A stretch of 56,301 nucleotides of DNA, the filler included, from Bipalium vagum (Eukaryota): the NCBI GenBank assembly GCA_037834085.1. It is 3 parts of 3 records of this genome, joined end to end, with 100 filler letters (N's around TTAATTAATTAA, not from the genome) between each part and the next. Parts side by side here need not be neighbours in the genome. Positions count along the whole stretch, not along the records: positions 34,796 to 56,301 come from JBBMKC010236250.1; 2 more parts are not named here. The stretch is one strand, 5' to 3'. The notes below the pieces were generated by a model. That model worked only from the letters and a program-made list of their open reading frames with translations. It ran no database searches and was not told the origin of the DNA. A program made the position numbers and the translations under genes. Positions 35,479 to 56,139 of the stretch are shown here, piece after piece (position 1 is the first letter of the stretch; each line of letters opens with the position of its first letter).

Positions 35479-38400
35479 ATTTTCGGTTACTTTTTTCCAA
35501 AACAACGTCCGATAAGAAGACATTTTCCATTCGGGGATAAAATATAAAGTTTTGATTTATCGAAACGCATTTCTTATCGTTTTGAATCAAACGCAATATA
35601 CACAGCAATGTTTCCTGTAAAACCAGAGTAATATCACTGTCCATTTTGTCTGCCAGCAAATCAGAAGTGTTTAACTGCAATAAATATTTTTGATATTAAA
35701 AAACAATTTTTTTCTTTTTTATAATTTACTAACTGATTACAAAATAAAACAGGTCAATTAAAAACTATCTTGAAAATCAATAAATAGGAAATGAACAACC
35801 TTATATTTTAGTAAAATTCAGTTTTCAATATAAAAAATATTCATAAAATTTTAATATTGATTCATGGTGCCATTTAAGTAATAAATTATTTTTTAAATGT
35901 TCATATGGTAACATTAAGTAAAAAATAAAAATAGAAGCACACTAGATAGATTGTGGTTTTTGTTTTAATTTTTGTTAAGTAACAATATCATTATTGAATA
36001 GTATAAATATCAATTGTAAAAAGATCCACTTTATAAGTGCGTTCAAAACTAAATTATTGACTCAGAAATTTTTAAAGCGACAATTGTTCAAAAAAAATTT
36101 TATTTATTTTTAAAAGAACAGCTTTGTAAAATGTTTAGAGTTTTTAAAACGACATAATAGAGGAAATATGATTGAGAAAAATTAATAAAAAAATACCAAT
36201 TGAAATATCTAAAAATAACTGGTTAAGTTTTACAGGAAAATTTTTTATTTAAAATCATTTTAAAAGTGAAAATAAATAATAAATTAAAGTCAACTTCAAA
36301 TTTAAAAACTTAAATTATCGATTATTTGATTGAATATATAATAAAAGATAAGATCAACATCTATCGATTTATATTCCATAAGTATAAGTTTATAAATTAT
36401 TTATTTTGCGTCATCAACCAAAAGTTAAATATTCAAACAAAATTAGCAAACGAAGAGAATTCGTATTATTATAAATTTTAAAAATACCTTTAAATAATAA
36501 AATCTTTACATGCCTATTTAAAACTATTGAAATTATAACAGTAACAAATACTATAAAATTTTAAATTATTAAATTAAATTATTTAAATTATGTGTTGATT
36601 TATTTATTTATATTTTAAAATATTTTCGTTTTAAGATTAAATTGGAAAAATATCACAAGAACCTAGTTGGGGGTGCTTATTGAGAAATAGATCTATCAAT
36701 TTAATTAATAAGTAAATCAAATATATAAGAACAGTGGAAAAGTTTGAAAATTTTGACTTTTTACTAAAGATTTCAATTTTCAAATTTATTTCAATCCAGT
36801 TATTTATTTACCGATATAATGTGAAAGAATGTAAAATTAAGTAAGCAGTAAAATAATATTAATTTAAATTTTTAAAAATTAATTAATCAAAAGTCACTTT
36901 TGTAATGATAATTGGACACTTGATTTAGTTATTATTGTTCTGGTTTTTTCTATTTTCAAAGTTCAAAAATAATCTATTTTGATCATACATTAATGTTAAA
37001 AAAAAATTCGGTATTAAAAAAGGTGGAATAACAAAAGACATTACTAAGACGTATTAACATTGAAAAAAATAGACAATCTACGTCAAAACTAACATCGAAT
37101 TGATCACAAAAAATATATATTGATTAGTTTTTAAGATTTTAAAAAATTGAAAAAAAAATTCTAATGGTGATGACAAGAAATAAAATAACTTATGAATTTA
37201 ATAAATATATAACATTTTTAGATTGCCGCAAAACCAGTAAAATTCAAAATTAAAGCGATTATAATTGCTTAATATTCTAGAAATCAAATCAAATAACACA
37301 ACATATTTTGTATAGAGATATCAATTTTTTTATTGTTGTTATAATAAATTTGCACTAAATGACGGTGACACGCTTTGATGTAATTTTTCAAAATGAGATG
37401 ATATTTTCTTTTGACAATAAAGAGAGAAGGAATTTTTTCAATTATATTTGCATTAATTGTCTTTCGCAACATGTCTCCAAAGATTTTCAAATAACCGAAA
37501 CAAATATTTTTCGAATCGAATAATAATTAATAAGAAAATCTTAAATATTCATTAAAAGAAGTCTACTTTGATCATAGTATTTTATGATGGGAAATGGTTC
37601 CGGTATTTTATTTATGAGGTGTGCTTGTTTCATAGTTTACATTTTGAATTATAAGTGTCATCATTTATAACTGCAAAAACCTTATTAATCATACTAATCA
37701 ATATTTTCAGAGATAAAATTTTGTTAATAACCAATCTATTGGTGATTTAAAAATTCTCATTTGTTTGTTTGATCATATGGAAACTTAATAAAACTTCAAT
37801 TTTAACATAAGTTTTAAAATCGATCATTATTTAAAAATTTTATTTTCATTGGTGGCAAATGAAATTAAATACTAATGTAGATAAATAAAGACTATTTTTT
37901 AAATTGTACATTGTTTTTAACAAGTTAAAAATGTTTTATTTCAATATTTGAAAATTATTATTCTAAATATCAAAAACAATATAGGATATATTTTAGATAT
38001 AATTATTCATTTTGGTACAATATTATCAATTTGTTTGGTTCACAAGAATCTTGGTGGTTTTTTTCGGATTTTGATGAGAATAAAACTATAACTAAAATAC
38101 TTATTAAAATAATAGACTTCGGAGTTACACTACTTTTAAGTATAATTTAAATTTTTGTTAACATCTGTAGTTAAAGTTTAAATATTAAATTAAATAGTTT
38201 AAATATTACATAGGAAATAACTATTTTTAGTATCAAATGTTATTTTGCATGATTTATAACAATGAAAACAGTGATAATTTACATAAAAATTTTAAATTTA
38301 GATTAATATTTTAAAATTTAAAATTCACATGGTCTGATTGCAGTTTTTATAAAGTAATTTCGGGTTTGGATTTAATACAAATATTTTTCCTTCAATCTTG

Positions 38401-40093
38401 GTTTAATTAACGAACTACGATAAAATTACTTTTGTGAATCTCACAGCTCTTCATTTCGATGATATTTTCTTTGTTCATATGACAGATAAACTGACCTTTG
38501 TATTTTTAATCAATACGTTCTTACAAACATTGAAATATCGATTTCTGTGAAAAATATAAAGAGAAAAATGTGGTTAGTCAATCTTATTTAGGTTGCCTTT
38601 AAAAATTTGGCGATTACGGTCAAAATTTTCATAACACATGCATTTTAGGGTGGTTAACAATGCGCTTTATTTCTTAATACACACCAATTATTATTATGGT
38701 AATAAGAAACTAAATTTTAAAGCTTCAGAGAAATGAATATAATAAATCTTGCATTGATTTTAACATATTAAGTGGTCACTTTAAGGAATATATGATATAT
38801 ACCTCTAAATTATCGATAATTGGATTGTTTTCATTGACGACACATTTGAAACATAAAACCCATTTTCCACTTTCCGATTTAGAAAAATCTGGAATTTCAA
38901 CATTAAATGTCACGCTGATGAGTCCTGTGAGCACACTTGATTCGATATTTGAAATCTTTATCACATACGATCCCTTCTTCAGATAAAAAAATTATTATGA
39001 CAAATAACACAAATTGATTTGAAATAAAATCAATGGTGTAATTTTCAAATAGGCAAAAGTATAGCAATAATAAAATTTAATTAACAAATAAATAAATAAA
39101 TACATAAAAGAAAAAATCACTAAATTATTTCAAAATAAATTTTAAAGATGAAGAAATTTAACAAAAAATAAATAAACTATCAATGGAAAATAAATCAAAA
39201 GAAAAACAAAAATATAAATACAAAAATCTTTAAATGTGAAATGAAAATAAATAAAATAAAGCTATTTTAAAAAATAAAAAATCTGAATTTTAATATCAAG
39301 GAAAATATAGATAACGTAAATAATCAATAGAACCAATGTAAAATAAATTGCCAAAATTCATAATCTTTATGTACAAAAATAAAATAATCAATTCAATAAA
39401 TTTTTTGGAAAAATAAATAAAATTATTATATAAAAATCTGTAAATTTATATGAAAATCATTAGAATTATAAATAAATCAATAGATTATAAAAATTTAAAG
39501 GCACAAATTCAATTTAAAAAATAATATATATTTATTAAAAGAAATCAATAAATTTAACTAGAAATAAAAGTAATTTAAATAATCACGCGTCACACGCCAA
39601 ATCGAAAATACTTACAAAAATATTTTGCAAATCTGTTTCTAAATAAAAATAAAACGAAATTCAAATTGGTAAAAGACAGGATTAAAAGAATAAATTACCA
39701 CAATGGTCGATATTATTATCTTTACTCATTGTAAAATCCAAGTGATTGACAATATCTGACCCAGTGGCATCACGAATGTCGACCATCGTAGCCTGAAAAC
39801 GGTAGCGATGGATAAAAAAGGAAGCATACAGTGACGATACGCAGACACAGACAAATAAATTTCAAAGAGAAAAAACCTAACTGAATTAGAATTGGTAGCC
39901 GATGTCAATGATGATCCATGCACTGAAATCAGCTGAAGAGAACTCTTATTTAGAATATTGCTCGACAAAACGCTCGGATTGTCCATTTGCTCAGTTTCAA
40001 TGACATTTGAATAAATCATCGGTCCTTCGACTACGGTCGATGGAGTCGTATTTTTCAAAGCAAATGTAGTTTCAAGCAAAAGAGGTTTTTCTG
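35479..40093 (-). CDS. Putative uncharacterised multi-exon gene
   Basis: Exon-like, stop-free, less AT-rich blocks with plausible splice sites at ~40093-39882 (S/T-rich), ~38977-38803 and 35674-35479. A full phase-consistent model could not be built. Confidence 0.4.
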
Positions 40094-41994: not shown

Positions 41995-44758
41995 TCAATT
42001 ACCGTTTTCCAGAGATTCCGTTTCGACGATCAGCACCGTCTCCTGTGCCACAGACTTGTTCTGCTTTCCATCGACATGGAAACAAGTATTGTTATCGGTA
42101 CTGATGACTGCATTGTAGTCTTTGTGGGAATTGTCTCGATAAACACTCATTTCTTTGTCCAATGATCGTTTGGCTTTGGTCCACATTCCTTTGTATTGAC
42201 TAATAATAGTAAAACTATTCATAATGCCTAAAATTATCGAAATTAAACTATTTATTCGATTAAATGGTTATAACATGAAAAACAAAACATAATGGACTTC
42301 AAATACTAGGTGAAACTAAAATAGTTTTTATGGACTTTTAGTGAATCAAATCTTGTGTCTCTTGTTATGCTAAAACCATAAAATGAAAAAAACAAAAATA
42401 TTTTGGAAATATTCTTAACTTCAAAAAGAAAGATTGTTTATTTTTGAACTTTTCATCCTTTTAAACTAAAATGAAAAATAATTATGATATCGATCAAATA
42501 ATGTAATATTCAGAATTGGTATTGATCAAAATATTTTACAGTCAATAAATTATATTTGTTATCAAATTTATTTTTATAATGGAAAAGATTATAGAAAGAC
42601 TAATTTAGCTTTTTTTTTAATATTTCCTCTTTGTTAATGAATTTTTTTTCATTTAAACAATATTTTGAGTTAAAAATCTCGAAAAATTCCCACTCATCTT
42701 TAGCACAAACCTTCATCCTGGTCGTCACCTGACTCCATTTCACCTTCTGAGATTTTAGCCGTTTTATTTGCTACTAACGAGTCCAAAATATCTCTCCATC
42801 GTCGACCCAGTAAATGTTTGACGAGACATTGCATTTGTAATTTGATACTGAGAAACAATTTGTCCAATTGGGCACCGATTGTGCTTTTGTCCTGTATTTT
42901 TGGGTTATCATAAACTCGAGACAATTTGTCTTCATATTCCAATCTCTTGATGAAGAATAGTCCAAAAAACGAAAATCAATCGATAATCTAAATTGATTTT
43001 TACCAGATTTTGAATCAGATCGGGAATATCTTGATCTTCCGCTTTATAAATGTCCAAATCGAACTCGAGAGATTCTCCATCATCCAATCCGAGTTCTTGG
43101 AGCATTCTTTTGTCCCGAAACCGTAACCGGAGATTAATTTTCGTACAATTGGGAATATTGGCAATGAATCGATCGATAACTTCCGTTCGATCAGAGATAT
43201 TGTCGTAATTCAATTCCACTTCGACCGGAAGACCTTTGGACTAAAAACAGAGAGAAAATTGAAATTTCTGACATTTCAACACAACAGACATACCTGGAAA
43301 ATTGGATGAAAATACAACTCTTCGGCCGTCGGTCGAAAACACGATAACGGATGAATACAAGAATTGATTATCTCTCGCAACCACTTATCACTGACCATCT
43401 CAATGACTTTAGGTCCTTTGCCGCTCAACGTTTTGGCTGCTACCTGGACAATGGTGTCACACTCATCGAAGGGAGTTCGATTTGTCATCACCTCCAACAT
43501 TAGCATGCCGAACGCGTAAATATCCACGCTCTCATCGTACTTTTCATCGAATATTTCCGGAGCCATAAAACCCAATGTCCCTGTTACCATGGCAACATTT
43601 GAAAAAAAATAATTAAATTAAGTAAAAACCCAATAAAAAATCAATAATACCCAGCATCGTTTTACGACCGCTCGTATGGACATGAGTGGCCAGACCAAAA
43701 TCGCCAACTTTAACGTTGAGGTATTCATCGTCGGTCTGACCGTACAGAAAGCAATTATCAGCTTTCAGATCGCGATGGATGATTGGAGGATCGCACTTTT
43801 GGTGCATGTAACGCAAAGCGTCTAATATTTGGTGCCACCAGCGGGTGATCAAAGGGAACTTTAGAATGCAATGGCCTTCCAAAAAATTTTTTTTAATAAT
43901 ATTCTTTAACGTACCTTCGCCCATCAATTCCTGGATAATTACAATTCCCTTTTCATCGATAATTGTAATGGAATCCTCATAAACATGCCATTCTCGCAAC
44001 ACGTCGAAACAGCGGACTATGTGCAAATGATTCATTTTTAACATAATTTCCGTTTCTCTAAACATGGACTGCCGTTTTTCTTTTGTATCAACGTGTTCAC
44101 GCTTAAATTCACACCAAGCTACATTTTTAGCTTCATCAACATCGTAACCTCTGTAAACAAATTTATATCCACCTTCTCCAATTTTTATATTAAATTTTAC
44201 CCAGCGACCGCATTTCGATTTTGCGATGGCCTTATGTTTAGCTTCCTGTTCAATCTGGTACTTTTTCAACATCTCCTCTTCCTTTTTTTTCTCACGTTCT
44301 TTTTTCCTTTCTTCTTTCGTCTTTTTTTTATCTTGAATGCTGGTATTTATATTATGTAATGAATAAACATCATTTGTATAATAAGTATTGCAGCTAACAT
44401 GTCTCTGTTTATTGTTGTTCATTAATTCCTCAAACTCAAACTCGTTGATTTTAGATATATCAATGATGCTATCAATATTGTTCAAAAATTCTTCCATTGA
44501 AAATTTTTGATCCGGAGAAGTGGATCTATCACAGTATTTAAATTCTTTGGGCGATTTTTGTAAGAAAGCAGCTTTACTTTCTAAGATATTCACATCATTT
44601 TCTTCGTCGCTTAATTTCGTTATGCAGTTTTTATCACTTGAATTATCAATAATAGACACATCATCATAAATTGATACATTCTTTTTGTTTAATTTATTTT
44701 CCGACTTTTTAAGTATTGATTTTCTACTATCATTATCTGTTTCATTATCAGAAAGCAT
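41995..44758 (-). CDS. WNK: WNK-family Ser/Thr kinase, compact (699 aa), atypical DFG motif
   Basis: Exons 44758-43651, 43580-43294, 43240-43004, 42945-42711 and 42227-41995 sum to 2100 nt in frame. GRWVKFNIKIGEGGYK (catalytic K in subdomain I), VAWCE (C in place of the subdomain II K), PPIIHRDLK, FMAPE, YDESVDIYAFG, then a PF2/CCT-like domain (INLRLRF..ESLEFDLD). Confidence 0.95.
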
Positions 44759-45881
44759 TCGATCAATATAACAATAAATGTAAAATCACAATATTTTTAA
44801 TTATATTTATTTAGTAAATCATTTAAAACACTTAAACAAATTTATTAAAATCATGTTCAATTAAAGATCCATAATTATTTATATTTATTAATTTATTATT
44901 ACTAATAAATTAACCTAGAAAAAAGTTACATTTACATTTATAAAATTATTTAATATATTTACAAAATGTTTTAGCCAAAAATTAATTTCATACAAAAAAT
45001 TTTAAATAAAAAAACTTAAATATGAATCAGAAAATTTCAGAAAATACATTAGAATGACTAAAAGTTTGTAGACTAATAGTTATTTGTTAGATAAACAATT
45101 AGACAATTGATTAATTAATAAATTATTATAATCAAGCAGGAGATCCAAATATTCAATCAATTCTAATAAAAAGAATAGATCAAACAGTAATGAAATATGA
45201 TGTAAAATATATTTTAAAATATTTTAAGGACAGACATGTTTCTCATATAAAATGATAATGAAGAGCAATATTCAAAATTAAACTTCAAAATAAAGACTAA
45301 AACGAGCTATAATAAAATTAACTGTGAAGAGTAAGATTGCTTTTGTTTATATTTTAAAACTCAGAAGCTTATTCTCAAAATAAGAGACATTTTAGCAAAA
45401 GAGCTTCATAAAGAGTTTAAAAGAAAGAGAATTTTTAAAAGTAAAAGAATTTAACAAAAATGCTATTTGGAGTTCAGGTATAACTTTTGTAAATAATTAA
45501 AAATCCATCAGTCACGAAGTGAAAGATGAAAAAGACTCACAAGACCTTCTGAACCAAAGAAAATCTACCAAATTATTCTAACAGTTTTAGATTTATAAGG
45601 CTGTATATATGTAAAGATTAAGTCAATATGTTATGAAACGAAGAGCATCTACGAATCAAGGAAAAATTGTAAAAAAAAAAAGAAGCATTCAATTTTGACT
45701 TCAGATGTTTAAATTGAATTTTTGCTTTATTCCTTTTTTTTTAATTTAAATTTTAATTGTTTTAATGTTTTATTTTAACATTTCCAGGAACAAAGTGACA
45801 TTATATTATTTTGTGATCCAATAAATTTTTATGTATTATATCATTAGAGTGGCAATACATAAATTTATAATTTATAAGATA

Positions 45882-46164: not shown

Positions 46165-46867
46165 TGTCAGCTTTCTCACTGAATACCCTAAAATATGAAT
46201 CAAAACATTTACAATAACAATTTATTCACTCTATCACAACAATTACAAATCAAAATCAATTTATAAATCAAATCAAAATCGTAAATCTATCAATGTCTAA
46301 AATGAAATAAAATCAAGTCAAATGGCAATGTTAATAATAAAGAAAAATATAATCAAATCAATAATCGATAATAATTATTAAGTAACAAAAACAGAAACAA
46401 AGTAATGTAAATGGATTTGTCTCACCGTGAGTGACAACAGGTCCCTGGGTCGTCCACTAGGCCCTTTTCAGGTCACCTAGGGAGTCCAAAACTCGACGGA
46501 ACCTTTTGTAAAATTCTTTTTCCGTATCTGTCATAATTTTCCGGGTTTATAATCCTGTTGAATACCTCTATTGAATAATCTCCTCGAATGTCTCTGAATA
46601 ATCCTCTTAAATCCTTCTAACGAATAATCTCCTGTGTCGTGTTGTTTTAAAAATTTCTTTTTAAATATTTTTTGGGGCATTTTTACGATCACCAAACCCT
46701 ACGCTTAGAGACGGCTATTTTTTTTATAATAGCCATCAACTCTATCTCCACGCTGAGGTAGATTCAGATCAATGCTAATGGAAACCTGCAGTTCACTCGA
46801 GAACGACTGTCGGAGAATCCATTATCTTAATGTGTCAAAATCCCCACGGCGAGATTTTGATAAGGTT
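46165..46867. repeat. LTR-like/unknown interspersed repeat running into the gap
   Basis: Begins TGTCAG, strong strand skew, repeated GAATAATC(T)CCT motifs at ~46560-46635, GC-richer non-coding patches. Confidence 0.3.
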
Positions 46868-47018
46868 NNNNNNNNNNNNNNNNNNNNNNNNNNNNNNNNN
46901 NNNNNNNNNNNNNNNNNNNNNNNNNNNNNNNNNNNNNNNNNNNNNNNNNNNNNNNNNNNNNNNNNNNNNNNNNNNNNNNNNNNNNNNNNNNNNNNNNNNN
47001 NNNNNNNNNNNNNNNNNN
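46868..47018. other. Assembly gap (151 N, no linker)
   Basis: Read directly from the sequence. Confidence 0.98.
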
Positions 47019-50000
47019 ATGTAAAAAAAAGTGTCAAGTCAAAAGAGAGAATTTGAAAAGTTGAACAAATTTTTTAAGAAAAATTTTGAGAATGAAGATG
47101 AAAATGAGACAGTAACGCTGAATAGTTTTAAAGAACAGAGTATTAAATATAATGTGATGAAAGGAAGGTCAAGTATAACTCTTAATATACATCGACGCGA
47201 AATGGAATGCTTGCTGGATACTGGAGCTAGAATAAATGTAATGAGTCGGAATATATTTCTAGAATTAGGCAAAAGTAGAAATACAAAGATGCACAGAGAC
47301 TATAAAGACTGCGAATAGTGAAATGAATGTGGTAGGAAAGATCACAGTTGATGTTTATATTGGAGATAGAGCTGAGTCAATGTCATTCATAATTGTAGAG
47401 AAGGTTTCACCAGAGTTGATTGGAGGAACAGAATTTTTGACAAAGTTCAGATTTATAATTAATGAAGATTCCGGTGGAAATGGAGGTCTCACAGGTATGC
47501 AACATTGAGACCACGTTTGGAAGAGTTGTTAAAAATGAAGAGCGCCTGCTGAGAGCAAAGAAGATATTAGTCACCGTCGAAGACAAGAAGCTCTTGGAAG
47601 CGATAGAAAAAAATAAAGAAGCATTTATGGCAGATCCGTGAGATATTGGATATACAAAAATGATGAAGCATGAGATCAAAACTATTAGAGAACCAATTTC
47701 CACGCAACAGTGGACACAGCCGATGCATCTAGAAGAGAAAATCGATGAAGCAATAAAGAATTTATTTAAGAACGGAATAATAAGAAAATACAACTCACCA
47801 TGGAACACTCCACTACTTTGCGTATGGAAAAAAGAAAGAAAAGATGTCAGATTACGACTAGACTTTAGAAAGCTGAATCAGGTGACTGAATGTCAGGTTT
47901 TTCCGATGCCAAATATAGAGGATTTATAGAATGGATTAGAAGAAGCGAATTATTTTAGCACAACTGAATTGGCTAATGCATAATACCAAGTTGAATTGAC
48001 GACAGATTCACAGGATATAAGAGCTTTTGCTTTTGGAATTTCCGCTGCTCCGAGTACTTTCCAAGAGCTAATGACTAAGGTTTAAGGAAATTTAAAGAAT
48101 ACGATGGTTTATTTAGATGATATCATGATTCATATAAAGGATATAGAACATCATTCTACGCGATATTAAATGAAGTGCTAAAGAGGATAAAAGAACAGAA
48201 TTATGAGTAAATCCAGAGAAGTGCTTTATATTAAGAACAGAAGTCAAATTTCTGGGCCAAATAATTGACAAACAAGGAATCAAGACAGACCCTGCGAAAA
48301 TTGAGACAATCAGAATCTTCAAGAAGCCAATATGTGTAAAAACTTAAAAAATCTTTCTAGGCATTTGTAATTACTATCGAAAATTTATCAATGGCATTGC
48401 AAAAAAACAAGAGTGTTAAAAAAATTGTGTAAGAAGAACAATGAGAAATTAATATAAACAGAAGCATGCACTGTAGCCTTCCAGGAATTGAAAGAGTCGG
48501 TAACAAAAACACCAGTGTTGTCTTTTTCAGACATTACAAGAACGTTTATATTAAACACTAACGACAATTTTGAAGCGACTAGAGCAGTGATGTCAAAGAG
48601 AGATTATAATGCTGGGACTGAAAAAGTTATTAAGTATACAGCTTATTTATACTATATGAAACACCTGAAAGAGACAGTAACAGAAGTTATAAAACCATGC
48701 GAAGAATCTTTTAGAAGAATAAAGTGGTCACAACAAAAACGAAAGAAGCTACAATAAAATTATCAGCAGATAAGCCATTAGAAAAGATATATATATAGAC
48801 ATTTTCGGAGCGTTAAAAGAAACATTTTGAGAAAACGATACATACTAGCTATTAAAGATCAGTATGTGGAGACTCTAGTCAAGCCAGACAATCCAAACAA
48901 ACCAAGATGGCCACCAAGAGCAGCCAATTCAAGACGCAACAACCAAAGACTGATAAAAACAGTAACATTTTAGTTGTGATCCTTTTTCTTTTTGAACAAT
49001 ACATTGTGTGATCCTTACTCCTTTCGAACAATGAATCAACACTTTAATTATGTATTTTGTGATTTCTTTGAAATGATAACGTGTTTTAATTTGATATTTT
49101 CAGTGTAGATATGGTTATAAAGTTTTAGTTATAAAAATATATGTATTAAAAAATTGTAAGTCGTCCTTGATTGATCCTTGATTGAAAAATAAATAATAAA
49201 ATGATATATAAAAAGAATGAAATATCATGTTAAATAGTATTTGTACTGTTGTATGGATAATAAAATAATATATAAAAATAATTTGAAATATCATGCGTAA
49301 TAATATATAAAAATTATTATTAACAGTTGTATTATTTATATTATTATATAAATTTAGTAAAATATTTGGAAATTTTTGTAAATTTAAAGAAATTTATAGT
49401 AAGGTAACATAAGGTTACTAAAAATAAAAAATAAGTGAAATTTTTATAATAAGAATTAAAGGAATAATAAAAATAATAATAAGAGTGGACAGAAGAATTA
49501 TAATAAGAAAAAGGAAGTTGTTATTTATAAAAAATAAGATAAAAATTACAGTATAGAAAGGGAACGAAAAAACATAGACGGCAGAAAGAAAAAGAAAAGA
49601 CAGCAATAATCCCACAGTAAAGTGCTCAATACTACGATTTCAACAGTTACAAAAATTTACTAAATCATAAAACGCCTATCAAAATCTACCACATTATAAA
49701 ATTAGAGTGAAGAACGTACAACAACCAAGCCCACTTCAATTATATCGAGAAACCAAGGAGATCCCACGCAGTCTATTCAGTTATATATAAAGGTGCTAGA
49801 AGAAACAAAAAATAAAAATAAAATAAAAATTTGACAAACGTATATGCTCTTCTGATTTTTCTTGAAAAGTAATTTTTAGTTCATTTTATTTTAACATTTT
49901 ATTTAGCAACTTGTTACACTCGTGTGACACTTTTATATATGTATTAATAATAAATTAAATTATTATTTATTTATTTTCTCAACTTGTTACACTCGAGTAA

Positions 50001-51400
50001 CAAAGTTTATTATAAAAAAATATATTATTCCCAATAATAGAAATAATAATAACTAGCTTGAAACCAAAGGTTATCAAGACTAGGTCGATTTTTAATAATA
50101 TATAAAATTCTTAAATTCTATTCAGAATCGATTTATTATAATTCCATAGAATTATAAAGAAATTTGATTTTGATTTGATATTTCATTTCATATATTCTTC
50201 TATTAATTAAAACAGGCGAGTCTTGTTAGACAAGACACCGTTTGTTTATAGTAAATAAATAAATAATCATGCCAGGACCTGAGGATTATCTAATTTTTTC
50301 ACTTTTACGTTCCTTTTACCTTTTTCTTTTTTCTTTTGTTATTTCACACACTAAGTAGGGCGATGAGATACATTTTTCTTCTTTAATCGAGGACCTCTGA
50401 GCGTAAGAGCGAGAGGATTTTTCTTAATAACAAATATAATTAATAAAATATTTTTCAATCAATCAAGGTCGATATCACACGTTTGTAAATTTAAACTTTA
50501 TTATAATAAAAATAAAAGTATTAAAAGTCAAATCGTTCTCTTAATCATTTTAACGAATATAAACGAACAGATAAACAAGCAACCTTCACACGTTAAGGCC
50601 TAAATACAGTAAACTTCACTTTTAAAATCTACCCATCTTTTAGGATCTTAACAAGTATATCAGGTACATTTCATTAACACCGATAATGAAACAAGATGAG
50701 GAAACAATAAGAAGAGTAATAATGGAAATTTGGATCTATAAATATGGGGAACCAAAGGAAATTCATGCAGACTGTGGAAAAGTCTTTGAATCTAGAGTTT
50801 TTAAGATACTAGTCAAACAAAGTAATGCAAAACTTTATTTGTCCAGTCCGTATCACCATAACACCAACAAGATAATAAAACAGCCATTCCGAACAATACG
50901 TGACTTCATGAATACTACTATGACTGAGAGAAGAAACAATGATTGGGAATTTTTTTTAGCAGGAATTGAGTTTGACTTAAACGCAAAATTTCAGAAAACA
51001 TTAGGATGCAGCCCAGCTGAAATCATATTTGGAAGAAAATTTTTACAGAGAGGCTTGGGCCAGTAATAAGATATCAGAAAGGTAGAAAAAGAAAACGTTC
51101 AAGAAAGACCAAGCAAAGCAACAACAAGAGGAAAGTTCGAACTTGGGAATCAAGACATGTAAAGGCCGACGGTAGAACTAAAGAGAAAGAAAGATATGAG
51201 GGTCCACATACGGTGAACAGAAATATTCACCAAAGAAGATAAGCATTAAAAGATAGAGAAGAAAAAACAATTGTAAGGAATGTTGAAAAAATTAAAATAT
51301 TCTTGAGAAAGGGGGATGTGAGTATTTAAACTGATTTCTAATTTTTAAATTTTAATACTGTGCCTAATTAAAATTTTTAATGAATTAATTTTAATTTTCA
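47019..51400 (+). mobile_element. Decayed Ty3/Gypsy LTR retrotransposon (PR-RT-RH-IN) with polypurine tract and start of the 3' LTR
   Basis: LLDTGARINV (protease); SPWNTPL..LDFRKLN..PMPNIED and VYLDDI (RT); RNase H remnant FILNTND; integrase IYID, IHADCGKVFES and SSPYHH. PPT GAGAAAGGGGGA is followed by TGTG at 51317. Confidence 0.93.
48865..50653. mobile_element. 1789-bp solo-LTR-like insertion inside the Gypsy integrase
   Basis: TG...CA termini with an AGTA target-site duplication (48861-48864 and 50654-50657). Removing it restores the frame AIKDQYIRYISLTPIMKQDE. Confidence 0.85.
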
Positions 51401-51915
51401 ATGTAACTGAAGGAATGGTTAGAAAATGGATTGCGGATAGGGATATCCTCGAGGGTATGCTAGCAACAAAAAGAGCCCGGCGTTACAAAAGGTCAAGTGT
51501 GAACGAAATTGAGGATGACATTTACAACTGGCTTGCGCAAAAGAGAAACCACATTAGACCAGTGAAAACAAATGATATACGAACCAGAGCAAAGAAGTTT
51601 GCAGAAGAGCACGGTTACCACAAATTTAATGCATCTTCGCGTTGGTGCAGTTATTCATGGTACGAAAAAAATTGTCAGTGTGAAGAAGAACAAGTGTTGG
51701 ACAATCACTGCCATGTGATCATCAGCAAAAATGTTTTTCTTTCCGGAAGTTTGTCGAAGCTGAAGCTTTAAACATTTATTCTCACAACCTAGGGAATATC
51801 GACGAAGTTCCTGTTCCCTTTGATGTCTTGTATGAACGGACTGTGGATGTTAAGGGGCGAGACAATATAAAAATTAATTTCACTGATCATGAGAAATCAA
51901 ACTTTACAGTTGTGT
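51396..51915 (+). mobile_element. pogo-family (POGK-like) transposase fragment
   Basis: FNVTEGMVRKW HTH, CENP-B-type HTH (IYNWL..FNASSRWC), then GNIDEVPVPFD..TVDVKG..HEKSNFTVV. Confidence 0.85.
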
Positions 51916-53046: not shown

Positions 53047-54123
53047 ATGACATCAATTCAAAAGGTTTTTCAACAAAGGAAGAAAACAGCAACAGAGTTA
53101 GAAAGTGAGCAATTTGAAAAGAATCAGGTAAGAATAAATAATTAAAATCATGTTTCAAAATACTTTTCAGAGTAATCATATTGCAAAAGCAATAAATTCA
53201 ATTGAAGGTGCTCCAAAAGAAAAGCATATAAGGGGTATAATTCTCGGAACCTTTCACTATGGTGGAGCTTCTTTATTTTTCAGACATACCAGTTTACATC
53301 AACTCCAAAGCAATCCAGTAGTGTGCTGGAAATATTTATATGTAGTTCATAAAATAATGAGAGATGGTCACGAGCAGGTTGAATATTACAATTATAATGA
53401 AACTATATAATAAAATATTGACAGGCATTGATAGACGTTATCAAAAACGAAAAAGTTACTCGCGAATTGGGTGACTTATGGGTAATAAAAATGTCCTATT
53501 TATTCGTAGACATTTCTATATTTTTAGGGTCATTTGAAGTCGAGTTACGGGGTAATTATTAGCACATTCTGTGCACTGTTATGTCAGAAAAACCGTTTCC
53601 ACAAAAAGGTAAGCTCATTTGTCCTTGTACCTCAAAAAATATCTGACGTGTAATCAATGCAGTACAGAAAAGTTCCGGGCAACTTAATAATGACCAATGA
53701 TGAAACATTTATATTTCACAAGAACATCGACAGTTTGTTCGTTTATTATCCGTTGTCGTTTGCGATGTCATGACTATTGGGTTTAGGTTTGAGTTGTGTC
53801 TGGACATTTTGGACTATTTACAGGAACTAGTCTCATTTGAGAAGTCCGTGGTCGATAGTCTAGACAAATCGAAAAGCAACTCTATGACCCCACAAGGTCA
53901 GTGTCGCCTGACTCCATTGATCCAAGTGATTCAAGATATGGCTACATTGTATGACATATGCGTTCGAATTATGTTCAGACTGTATTCCAAATTGGATATC
54001 GATCTGTTGTCAGGTCATCGACAGCGGTTCCTCAAATTGTTCGAGGCCATTAAAACTTTTTTCAAACAGGCTCAAACTTTTCAATATTTTAAAACCCTCA
54101 TCCAGGTTCCTGCGTTACCGGAA
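53047..54123 (+). CDS. HIP1: Huntingtin-interacting protein 1 / HIP1R / Sla2 family, N-terminal ANTH domain (gene presumably continues beyond the window)
   Basis: Exons 53047-53127, 53171-53377, 53425-53481, 53528-53608, 53663-53736, 53787-54123. Peptides EQFEKNQ, KAINSIEGAPKEKHIRGIILGT, WKYLYVVHKIMRDGH, ELGDLWGHL, SMTPQGQCRLTPLIQVIQD, LQ-type QYFKTLIQVPALPE. Confidence 0.95.
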
Positions 54124-56139
54124 GTATGATTGATATATTGATTTTTTTTCAATAGTAATTTCAATTTTTAATGAATCTGATTGGTGGACTTTGTTGGGTA
54201 CATAAGTTTACTTCACTTTCAGTACTCGTTACAAATTACCTTTTTTCTAATATTTCCAATTTTGGTTGATTTCCGATTTTGGATTTCTTGATTTCTTGAT
54301 TTATTTTATTTTTAAGGTCACACTGTGCAATGTTGATTTTTAAAATTCTAATTTTAAAATAAAATCCTATTGGGACCCTATATGTACTCTTAATCGGTTT
54401 TTATAATGGAAATAGATAAAATGTAAATTTCTGAACAATTATAATTGATTTTCATTTGGGATCCGCTATTTTCAAGTGATATTTATTTATTTTCATTCGA
54501 ATATTGATATTTAAGAGTATATAATGATTGATTATATTGTTATCATTTGTGATAATCTCAAGAAAACTGAGTGGAGGGTGTTCTTCTTTATGTTGATAGG
54601 GCGAATTGATTATTTATTGATTTATTCGATATTTTAAAAATACTCTTATTTTTAACGTCATAACCCGACAGTTTCAACATATTTTATAATCGATTAAATT
54701 AGGTTGGGAATCCATATGATCTTATCGATTTTTCATAAATTTGTAAAACTGATCATGACAGATTTTAATTTGTGATTTGTTTATTTCAAGTGATATTTCT
54801 TTGGTCACAAATAGATATCGATTTTTGAAAGTGAAAACTAAAACATGTGATATTCCTCCAGAGCATAATATTTGGGAGATTTTCTTTTTATTACTGTAAT
54901 GAATTAATATTTTATTGATTTCCGAAAATCCACTACTTTTCTTCACAAAATTTTATCCATAATAAATCTCTCGGAACACATTCTCTTGCTATCAAATGGT
55001 TTTCATCTCACCCGAGAAGCCTGTCTCAGTTACCCAGGGGGTCCATTCAAAAATGTTTTGTTTTATTTTTTATATTTAAAAGTTAATTTGTATCATCGAT
55101 TTTTTCAAGCCTTATCAAACCGATGCGCATGGATATTAATGCGTGTTAATTCTTTAACAATCGATTGAATAATTATTGAATAATTTTTTTTACAAAAGTA
55201 CTCAATACCCCCATACAACAAATTAAATTTATCCATTGATTTAAAAATAATTATAATTTATTGATCGATTTCAGTTCTATCAAAATTAAATTTTGATTTT
55301 TTTACTTTTCACAATAAAAATGTTAGAGAAATTTTCAATTTTTCTTCCTACCGTAAAATAAATTGATTATTTTGATTATTGATTTAAATTCAACTGCAAC
55401 TGTAAATTCATCTGAAATATCACATTTGGCATTGGGGTCTCTGTTTTGAAACTTGTAATCGATTTGAAATGAAGATTATTAAGAGATTTAAAATAAATCC
55501 CAAATAAAATATTAATTAATTTTTCCTTTATATTTTTGTGTAATTTTTTGGGATTTATTTTTAATAAATGATATAAATACAATTTTAAATTTTGATTATA
55601 AAACTTCATGAGTTATAAAAACTTCAAAAAAATGATAGTATTTTGGTTCTTCAACTTAAATTCATCTGGTTATATTTAAGTATTATTCTTATGTTGAAAA
55701 CAAAAGGCTTGAATATCTCGAATAAAATATTCACAAATTTATCGATAAATTTTTCGTTTTTAGTTTTTAATTTATCTGAGCGAAATTTAATTAATTAAAT
55801 TTAAAGATATATTTTGATAGTAGAGAATAAAAATGTCACAATCGATATAATTTTTGGTACTTCATTTTTGATTCATGTAATTAATTTTAAATTTAACAAT
55901 AGATTTTAATTGAATTGAATATAACAAAAGAAAGGTACTTAGAACTATTTAACAATATTAATTCATTAAATGGAAAGACTTATTGATTTGAATACATTCT
56001 TATGTGTCCTAATCGTTTTTCTCCACATTCTTACAGCTATTATTTTAAATTGTTTTGTGAGTTCCGTGGGTTTTTAAAAAGCTTTTTTCTAGTCTCTGAA
56101 TCTATAAAGTTGGTTTGTACTCTTATCAGGATCGACATA

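Follow-up and report, generated by a model that had tools for sequence, protein, structure and literature searches.

The window analysed here, a 56,301-nucleotide stretch of DNA from the flatworm Bipalium vagum (GenBank assembly GCA_037834085.1), contains a minus-strand gene for a kinase of the WNK family in which the D-L-G motif of canonical animal WNKs reads D-F-G. Among the intracellular chloride sensors of animals, WNKs are the best established, and they have recently been described as potassium and osmotic sensors as well. D-F-G-L occurs in 37 of the 37 flatworm WNK-like proteins found and also in the window gene (38 of 38), and other positions of the ion sensor are changed along with it. 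We consider it about 60% probable that these proteins form a phylum-wide, fast-evolving WNK lineage that is catalytically competent and in which direct inhibition by chloride and potassium is weakened or lost. The part of the window examined is 34796-56301 (record JBBMKC010236250.1), and the gene model comprises exons 1 to 5, which were handled separately. All gene coordinates below are on the minus strand.

Kinase identity and ion-sensor positions

The gene encodes a WNK-family kinase, as a preliminary description of this DNA had concluded. Compared with solved structures, exon 1 fits WNK1 and WNK3 best (117-122 bits), and the next family, GCN2, reaches 55 bits. Its open reading frame (ORF) contains GEGGYKFVYRG, in which the Gly-loop Lys (44162-44164, AAA) aligns with the catalytic K233 of WNK1; every complete flatworm row has K in this alignment column. 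Instead of the beta3 Lys of most kinases, the frame has Cys within VAWCEF (44111-44113, TGT; WNK1 C250 equivalent). The activation-loop autophosphorylation site, equivalent to S382 of WNK1, is Thr (43658-43660, ACG), a residue present here in 36 of 37 flatworm proteins. An 814-amino-acid protein that is 97% identical over exon 1 (P0001) was used as a stand-in for the spliced window product. Its AlphaFold model has a predicted local distance difference test score (pLDDT) of 80-95 over the kinase and is also confident over a following beta-alpha-beta-alpha-beta-alpha unit. Foldseek places the WNK3 kinase-CCT1 didomain (5o2c; 375 columns, E = 8e-28) at rank 1 for this model, with WNK1 or WNK3 throughout ranks 2-27. 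An ESM Atlas search returned generic kinase clusters only. In phylogenetic trees the window sequence falls in one clade with the animal WNKs (support 90/81), as a long-branched sister and not outside the family.

The D-F-G motif lies at 43694-43702 (GAT TTT GGT; WNK1 D368-L369-G370 positions). The minus strand reads AAC GTT AAA GTT GGC GAT TTT GGT CTG GCC ACT, or NVKVGDFGLAT, with D at 43702-43700, F at 43699-43697 and G at 43696-43694, so that the codons given in the preliminary description are exact by translation. The TTT codon that it proposed to confirm in reads is matched without difference by a contig from sequencing run X2, which comes from another study than the probable source run, X1; read support is thus at the level of contigs. 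This 205-base contig spans 43511-43715 with 0 differences at a depth of 3.2 and covers both the DFG motif and the Gly codon at the WNK1 E388 position, and a second X2 contig of 261 bases matches 43759-44019, also with 0 differences. Run X1 contains every sampled word of 42650-44800 (share 1.00), with placed pieces of at most 35 bases. A joint in run X1 from 43904 to 44343 has sides of 22 bases and probably reflects a repeat.

One could imagine a miscalled base or a pseudogene copy in decay, since TTT is a single base off a Leu codon, the read evidence is at contig level and no RNA run was found. We give this explanation a vanishingly small chance. The contig from the second study is identical, open frames with GT..AG introns extend over five exons, and the same Phe occurs in 37 of 37 orthologues. 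Sequencing error and pseudogene were rejected on these grounds.

Chloride binds at the DLG motif of WNKs and a Leu-to-Phe change there reduces inhibition, points of the preliminary description that are borne out by earlier studies (PMC7606576; PMC13397483; bioRxiv 10.1101/2021.07.16.452737). In WNK1, chloride is bound by the main-chain amides of G370 and L371 and makes contact with the hydrophobic side chains of F283, L299, L369 and L371, and the L369F mutant is activated and insensitive to chloride (PMC7606576). WNK3 L295F shows reduced inhibition by potassium and serves as a chloride-insensitive mutant, WNK1 T301 contacts D368, and the WNK1 E388A and WNK3 E314A/Q mutants keep full activity and lose much of their inhibition by potassium, chloride and water (PMC13397483). 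Drosophila WNK L421F is chloride-insensitive in vivo (bioRxiv 10.1101/2021.07.16.452737).

These positions were compared in an alignment of 272 kinase domains, with 147 animal-type rows from outside the flatworms (Gly-loop Lys and beta3 Cys) and 104 non-animal rows. An unrelated repeat kinase (P0006), two cluster members with no kinase match (P0152 and P0155) and a misaligned sequence that is not WNK-like (P0273) were left out of the counts. At F283, L299, L369 and L371 the window has C, I, F and L, and the canonical signature of a DLG motif with its hydrophobic pocket, which animals conserve but which does not define the family, is absent. Position 369 is L in 146 and M in one of the 147 other animal-type rows and F in none, which agrees with the earlier observation that this gene has DFG where animal WNKs read DLG. 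The Cys at the F283 position (IVRCFD; 44009-44011, TGT) is shared by all 31 Neodermata-type rows, is replaced by Y in Macrostomum, and stands opposite F in 147 of 147 other animal-type rows. The L299-V300-T301 positions read I-I-Q (43931-43939; ATT ATC CAG). Ile occupies position 299 in 35 of 35 flatworm rows, and Leu does so in 145 of the 147 other animal-type rows. The E388 position is Gly (43570-43572, GGT), changing TPEFMAPE to TLGFMAPE. Gly is found there in all 36 flatworm proteins that cover the column, and Glu in 137 of 140 other animal-type rows with a residue at this position and in 93 of 104 non-animal rows. G370 and L371 are invariant in flatworms.

The change at T301 is restricted to the Neodermata-type rows, which have Gln (window codon 43931-43933). 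Thr is retained in Macrostomum, in 147 of 147 other animal-type rows and in 101 of the 102 non-animal rows with a residue there. We take T301 to be the gatekeeper position. A Gln here calls for explanation, WNK1 T301A being nearly inactive (PMC13397483). DFG, I299, T382, L384, L387 and G388 are common to Macrostomum and the parasites and should therefore be older than their split; C283 and Q301 appear to have arisen after it.

The flatworm proteins resemble canonical animal WNKs (human WNK1-4, Drosophila WNK and C. elegans WNK-1) in their fold, the Gly-loop Lys, the beta3 Cys, the PPIIHRDLK loop and the activation-loop phospho-acceptor, and in having a probable CCT1/PF2-like domain followed by a long disordered C-terminus. 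The window protein is about 40% identical to WNK1 and WNK3. It differs in DFG, in I, C and Q at L299, F283 and T301, in TLGF for TPEF and in two insertions, one in the N-lobe and one before DFG, and its CCT1-like domain, unlike that of canonical WNKs, is below Pfam detection. The engineered mutants WNK1 L369F (also with L371F), WNK4 L322F/L324F, WNK3 L295F and Drosophila L421F carry the same change at the same position as the flatworm proteins, and they are reported to stay active while responding poorly to inhibition by chloride and, in the case of WNK3 L295F, by potassium too. However, each of them has one or two changes in an otherwise canonical pocket, whereas the flatworm form is natural, is conserved across the phylum, keeps L371 and alters three other sensor positions. 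The loss of the acidic residue after the activation-loop Thr-Pro likewise recalls WNK1 E388A and WNK3 E314A/Q, although in flatworms E388G comes combined with P387 to L, V or F, with I384 to L and with DFG.

Distribution and ancestry of the DFG form

A HMMER search of 1.84 billion representatives gave 8969 hits at E <= 0.001, and the counts that follow were taken from the best 150 of 992 strong hits. These comprise 141 D-L-G-L proteins, one DMG protein (from Creolimax), seven WNK-like DFG proteins and the unrelated P0006, which reads DFGF. The seven DFG proteins are the closest relatives of the window gene among these 150, with scores of 143-440 bits; all others score 123 bits or less. The 37 flatworm proteins come from the trematodes Schistosoma (six species), Heterobilharzia, Dicrocoelium, Opisthorchis, Clonorchis, Calicophoron and Paragonimus (three species), from the monogenean Protopolystoma, from the cestodes Echinococcus (two), Taenia (two), Mesocestoides, Rodentolepis, Hymenolepis, Schistocephalus and Spirometra, and from the free-living Macrostomum lignano (four proteins); two further proteins complete the set. 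The preliminary description had suggested that the motif might mark a rewired signalling branch of a probably freshwater animal. This idea does not hold, because the motif is found in flukes and tapeworms of mammals as well as in Macrostomum lignano and is therefore independent of habitat, and a freshwater adaptation was rejected as its explanation.

The DFG motif is not confined to flatworms once WNK-like kinases from outside the animals are considered. Among the 104 non-animal rows, 14 read DFG, including Lotharella and one Paramecium protein, and 17 read DMG; diatom and Alexandrium WNK-like proteins also read DFG. A universal DLG in WNKs is ruled out by these rows together with the diatoms and dinoflagellates. 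The DMG rows are mostly from chytrids and related fungi and read D-M-G-T with Thr at the S382 position (P0237-P0262 and others), which makes DMG a third natural variant of the chloride-site motif. These protist and early fungal kinases share with the flatworm proteins the Gly-loop Lys, the lack of a beta3 Lys and a non-DLG motif, but their beta3 residue is Asn or Ser and they fall outside the animal clade. These kinases arose independently of the flatworm form. Our literature search found no study of ion sensing in these DFG or DMG protist and fungal WNK-like kinases.

E388 is replaced by G, H or Q in seven of the 14 non-animal DFG rows (P0210, P0222, P0229, P0234, P0271, P0272 and P0274), compared with eight of 231 rows without DFG, some of the eight being truncated fragments. 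Three of the seven, P0271, P0272 and P0274, read T[LM]GF like the flatworms. The association has a Fisher p of 2e-6 if kinship is ignored, and it corresponds to about three independent clades, or about four independent pairings of DFG with E388 loss when the flatworms are included. This recurrence provides a lead that the DFG and E388 positions may work together.

Phylogenies were built from 84 of the 272 aligned rows (a quick tree, with animal and non-animal DLG and DMG rows sampled at random) and from 39 named rows (a careful tree). The careful tree resolves a flatworm clade with support of 100/100 on a stem of 1.27 substitutions per site, sister to all other animal WNKs, and the quick tree agrees that flatworms and animal WNKs form one clade. 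The window sequence falls among the Neodermata-type rows, together with P0001 (100/100), and is 71-82% identical to trematodes, cestodes and Protopolystoma alike. The position of the flatworm clade could reflect long-branch attraction or an old duplication. In an approximately unbiased (AU) test, a single clade of flatworms and the annelid Helobdella was not rejected (delta log-likelihood 8.7, p-AU 0.107). On these trees the DFG gene would be the long-branched sister of all other animal WNKs, and a fast-evolving orthologue is also allowed by the data.

The preliminary description called the gene a paralogue, and this label now fits poorly. DFG is the WNK form of the whole phylum in 38 of 38 sequences, and no flatworm-named DLG WNK was met in any listing, in a search that was indirect and not exhaustive. 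If the gene were an extra paralogue, its genome would also contain a canonical DLG WNK, and the DFG gene would serve a signalling branch of its own. A clade outside the canonical animal WNKs on a 1.27-substitution stem is what an old duplicate would produce, and the scan for flatworms was limited to the best 150 of the 992 strong HMMER hits. In addition, WNK is not named in the table of absent families of the S. haematobium kinome, and the term occurs once in that paper's text (PMC4669435). Several observations argue in the other direction. When the 20 least vertebrate-like DLG representatives were looked up, the 14 with names were 13 invertebrates (tardigrade, insects, crustaceans, nematodes and leech) and one mole, and none was a flatworm. 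The DFG clade has no member from outside the flatworms among the best 150 matches listed, and the placement with the annelid withstood the AU test. In Echinococcus, Taenia, Clonorchis, Paragonimus and S. japonicum the DFG protein carries the annotation 'WNK1' or 'WNK4'. The S. haematobium kinome paper speaks of one WNK1-like kinase, listed as 'unclassified' and transcribed in adults at 2.6 transcripts per million in females and 9.8 in males, and it places a Fray-subfamily kinase in schistosomes (PMC4669435). We regard the extra paralogue as improbable, and the chance that flatworm genomes hide a canonical DLG copy is similarly low.

Predicted ion response of the flatworm kinase

The flatworm WNK is best read as a catalytically competent enzyme. 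The Gly-loop Lys, the alphaC Glu, HRDLK, the catalytic-loop Asn, the DFG Asp, APE and the activation-loop Thr are all conserved across flatworms. It has to be asked whether catalysis has nevertheless been lost, leaving a scaffold whose action would depend on the CCT-like and C-terminal regions alone. In favour of this, the branch is very long, the parasites have Gln at the otherwise invariant T301, where the WNK1 T301A mutant retains about 2% activity (PMC13397483), and the schistosome orthologue was left unclassified by kinome software (PMC4669435). However, T301 is kept in Macrostomum, and the kinase domain of the window-type protein is 71-82% identical to its trematode, cestode and monogenean orthologues, which points to strong constraint. 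A pseudokinase is very improbable because the catalytic residues, from the Gly-loop Lys to the activation-loop Thr, are conserved phylum-wide.

If the kinase is active, it would autophosphorylate its activation-loop Thr and signal in the manner of other WNKs, probably to a Fray/OSR1 kinase. The Phe of the DFG motif packs into the regulatory spine of kinases. Its presence here restores the general kinase motif and should tip the enzyme towards the active arrangement. The restraint that chloride and potassium exert on other WNKs would be weak or absent in flatworms, and the enzyme might instead be controlled through its abundance, its partners, osmotic crowding, upstream phosphorylation or similar inputs. 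Weak or absent inhibition by these ions is expected because changes of the L369F type and of the E388 type each blunt inhibition in mammalian and fly WNKs. The flatworm WNK is accordingly predicted, as the most likely case, to be poorly or not inhibited by intracellular chloride and potassium. The term 'chloride-blind' in the preliminary description remains an inference, and it gains strength from the changes at L299, F283, E388 and T301.

Several points weigh against this conclusion. Ion insensitivity is an argument by analogy, drawn from point mutants in a sequence background unlike that of flatworms. The main hold on chloride comes from the main-chain amides of G370 and L371, and flatworms keep both residues. 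The F283C change takes away bulk beside the additional Phe, which could leave a remodelled pocket instead of none; to this it can be countered that Macrostomum has Y at the F283 position. RFx[V/I] motifs for docking SPAK/OSR1 occur in only six of the 15 flatworm proteins scanned, namely three from Echinococcus (for example NRFTV), Macrostomum P0156 (GRFTV), Dicrocoelium and Paragonimus heterotremus. The other nine of the 15, including S. japonicum P0004 and all short models, have none. The free tree sets the flatworms outside other animals, Hydra included, and gives the others alone 98/96, so that an old paralogue is possible. No second canonical WNK was found in a search that left whole flatworm genomes outside its scope. 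The window gene model covers none of the C-terminal two thirds of the gene, and an RNA run for the window copy was looked for and none was found.

The main rival to weakened or lost inhibition is a remodelled but working sensor. In this case C283, F369 and I299 would be mutually compensating changes, chloride would still bind the backbone amides, and the set-point would be shifted to suit the flatworm cytoplasm. The invariance of G370 and L371 is compatible with such a pocket, and so is the fact that F283C and L369F are neighbours in it and change together in all 31 Neodermata-type rows. WNK1, WNK3 and WNK4 already vary widely in chloride sensitivity (PMC7606576). Nevertheless, Macrostomum combines F at 369 with Y, not a small residue, at 283, and E388, a separate second determinant, is lost in 36 of 36 flatworm proteins. 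The L369F-type change alone is also reported to blunt chloride inhibition in WNK1, WNK3 and fly WNK. We therefore judge a remodelled sensor unlikely, though with a larger chance than an extra paralogue. A stronger form of the preferred reading of weakened or lost inhibition would make this gene the single WNK of the phylum, with no direct sensing of chloride or potassium and with DFG, E388G and L299I fixed before the divergence of Macrostomum and the parasites. We advance that form only tentatively, as somewhat doubtful.

Gene structure, locus and meaning for flatworm biology

The kinase is encoded by a multi-exon gene with open frames and GT..AG introns across five exons. Exon 1 (43651-44758; ORF 43613-44758; Pkinase E = 1e-28; tblastn matches to P0001, P0002, P0004 and P0005) begins at an ATG with a stop upstream of it, and encodes a low-complexity N-terminus, a coiled Lys/Glu stretch and the kinase N-lobe up to the start of the activation loop. 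It ends in KTML plus the G of a phase 1 junction, with the GT donor at 43650-43649. Intron 1 (43581-43650; 70 nucleotides, GT..AG, phase 1) is followed by a frame that picks up at 43580, and P0001 reads KTMLGTLGFMAPE across this junction. Exon 2 (43294-43580; ORF 43276-43590) encodes the remaining activation loop, (G)TLGFMAPE, and the kinase C-lobe; it matches Pkinase at E = 2.6e-12 over profile positions 157-263 and is 98% identical to P0001 by tblastn. Intron 2 (43241-43293; 53 nucleotides, GT..AG) has the same junction in P0001. Intron 3 (42946-43003; 58 nucleotides, GT..AG) follows exon 3, and P0001 reads LIQNL|RLEYEDKL here. The three introns within the kinase and CCT1 region are short, at 53-70 nucleotides.

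Exon 3 (43004-43240) is a candidate for a divergent CCT-like 1 (PF2-like, autoinhibitory) domain of beta-alpha-beta-alpha-beta-alpha form. Sequence searches of Pfam (PF12202 and PF24889 included), NCBIfam and the PDB gave no useful match for this exon. An hhalign comparison of 13 flatworm post-kinase segments with 113 canonical ones gave a probability of 86.9% (E = 4.2e-6) over only 35 columns, centred on an LRLR..D...EF.FD core. Folded alone with AlphaFold2, exon 3 has a pLDDT of 74.8, from an alignment that held canonical WNKs and may favour a WNK-like result. The four best Foldseek matches of this fold are the WNK2 CCT1 domain, the WNK1 autoinhibitory domain, the WNK3 kinase-CCT1 didomain and WNK2 CCT-like 1, all weak (E = 0.05-0.16). 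The PF2-like domain that the preliminary description placed downstream of the kinase is consequently favoured by the profile and fold comparisons, but Pfam shows none. A PF2-like/CCT1 domain directly after the kinase is probable on the basis of these models.

Exon 4 (42711-42945), matched by tblastn, would encode a long helical region 3' of the CCT1-like domain, which corresponds to helix 532-614 of the P0001 model; its donor is placed at GAAG|gt in phase 1. The predicted boundaries of exon 5 (42003-42227) enclose NSFTIISQYKGMWTKAKRSLDKEMSVYRDN, a stretch conserved in orthologues from trematodes and cestodes (tblastn of P0002, P0004 and P0005). Further along, weak tblastn matches to the long orthologues occur at 38803-38976 and 35483-35689. 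The gene very probably continues beyond exon 5 towards 34796, where the piece ends, because flatworm orthologues are 2000-2860 amino acids long and these weak matches lead in that direction. The sequence 34796-56301 is strongly AT-rich, with a GC content of 0.19-0.25 in non-coding sequence and 0.32-0.40 in the kinase exons and gene.

Other features of this piece lie on the plus strand. Two ORFs within 53150-54129 match ANTH (E = 5.5e-16 and 1e-20; profile positions 5-81 and 147-261). They are presumably exons of a HIP1/Sla2-like endocytic adaptor gene, and Pfam gives ANTH only. A broken long terminal repeat (LTR) retrotransposon pol region at 47031-51066 has weak matches to gag-asp protease, RT_RNaseH_2, zf-H2C2 and the integrase core in separate short ORFs, and these remains adjoin a run of N at about 46865-47020. 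The ORF at 51415-51771 contains a Tc5 transposase DNA-binding helix-turn-helix domain (E = 9e-9) and is likely a remnant of a pogo/Tigger-type transposon.

Our literature search, which left most subscription journals outside its scope, found no description of a DFG flatworm WNK. The mentions of flatworm WNKs that it returned are the 'unclassified WNK1-like' kinase of the S. haematobium kinome (PMC4669435) and a planarian wnk1 that was a hit in RNA interference. Both the kinase family and what the key substitution does are already known. As far as we have seen, a natural, phylum-wide loss of the sensor signature at multiple sites is undescribed.

The field uses Leu-to-Phe point mutants as chloride-insensitive tools, and the flatworm WNK offers the natural counterpart of this experiment. 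It could show whether ion sensing is separable from the other roles of WNKs, which residues are sufficient to bring sensing back, and how osmoregulation is wired when sensing is missing. The active site of the fluke and tapeworm WNK also differs from that of the host, by DFG and by the Gln at T301 in the parasites, which is relevant to selective inhibitors. If the repeated pairing of DFG with E388 loss in protists has the significance suggested here, it would mark the two positions as one coupled sensor. If direct inhibition has indeed been weakened or lost, then the role of WNK as an ion sensor would not be universal in animals, and flatworms would control cell volume and protonephridial ion transport with a constitutively ion-blind WNK that is governed by other inputs.

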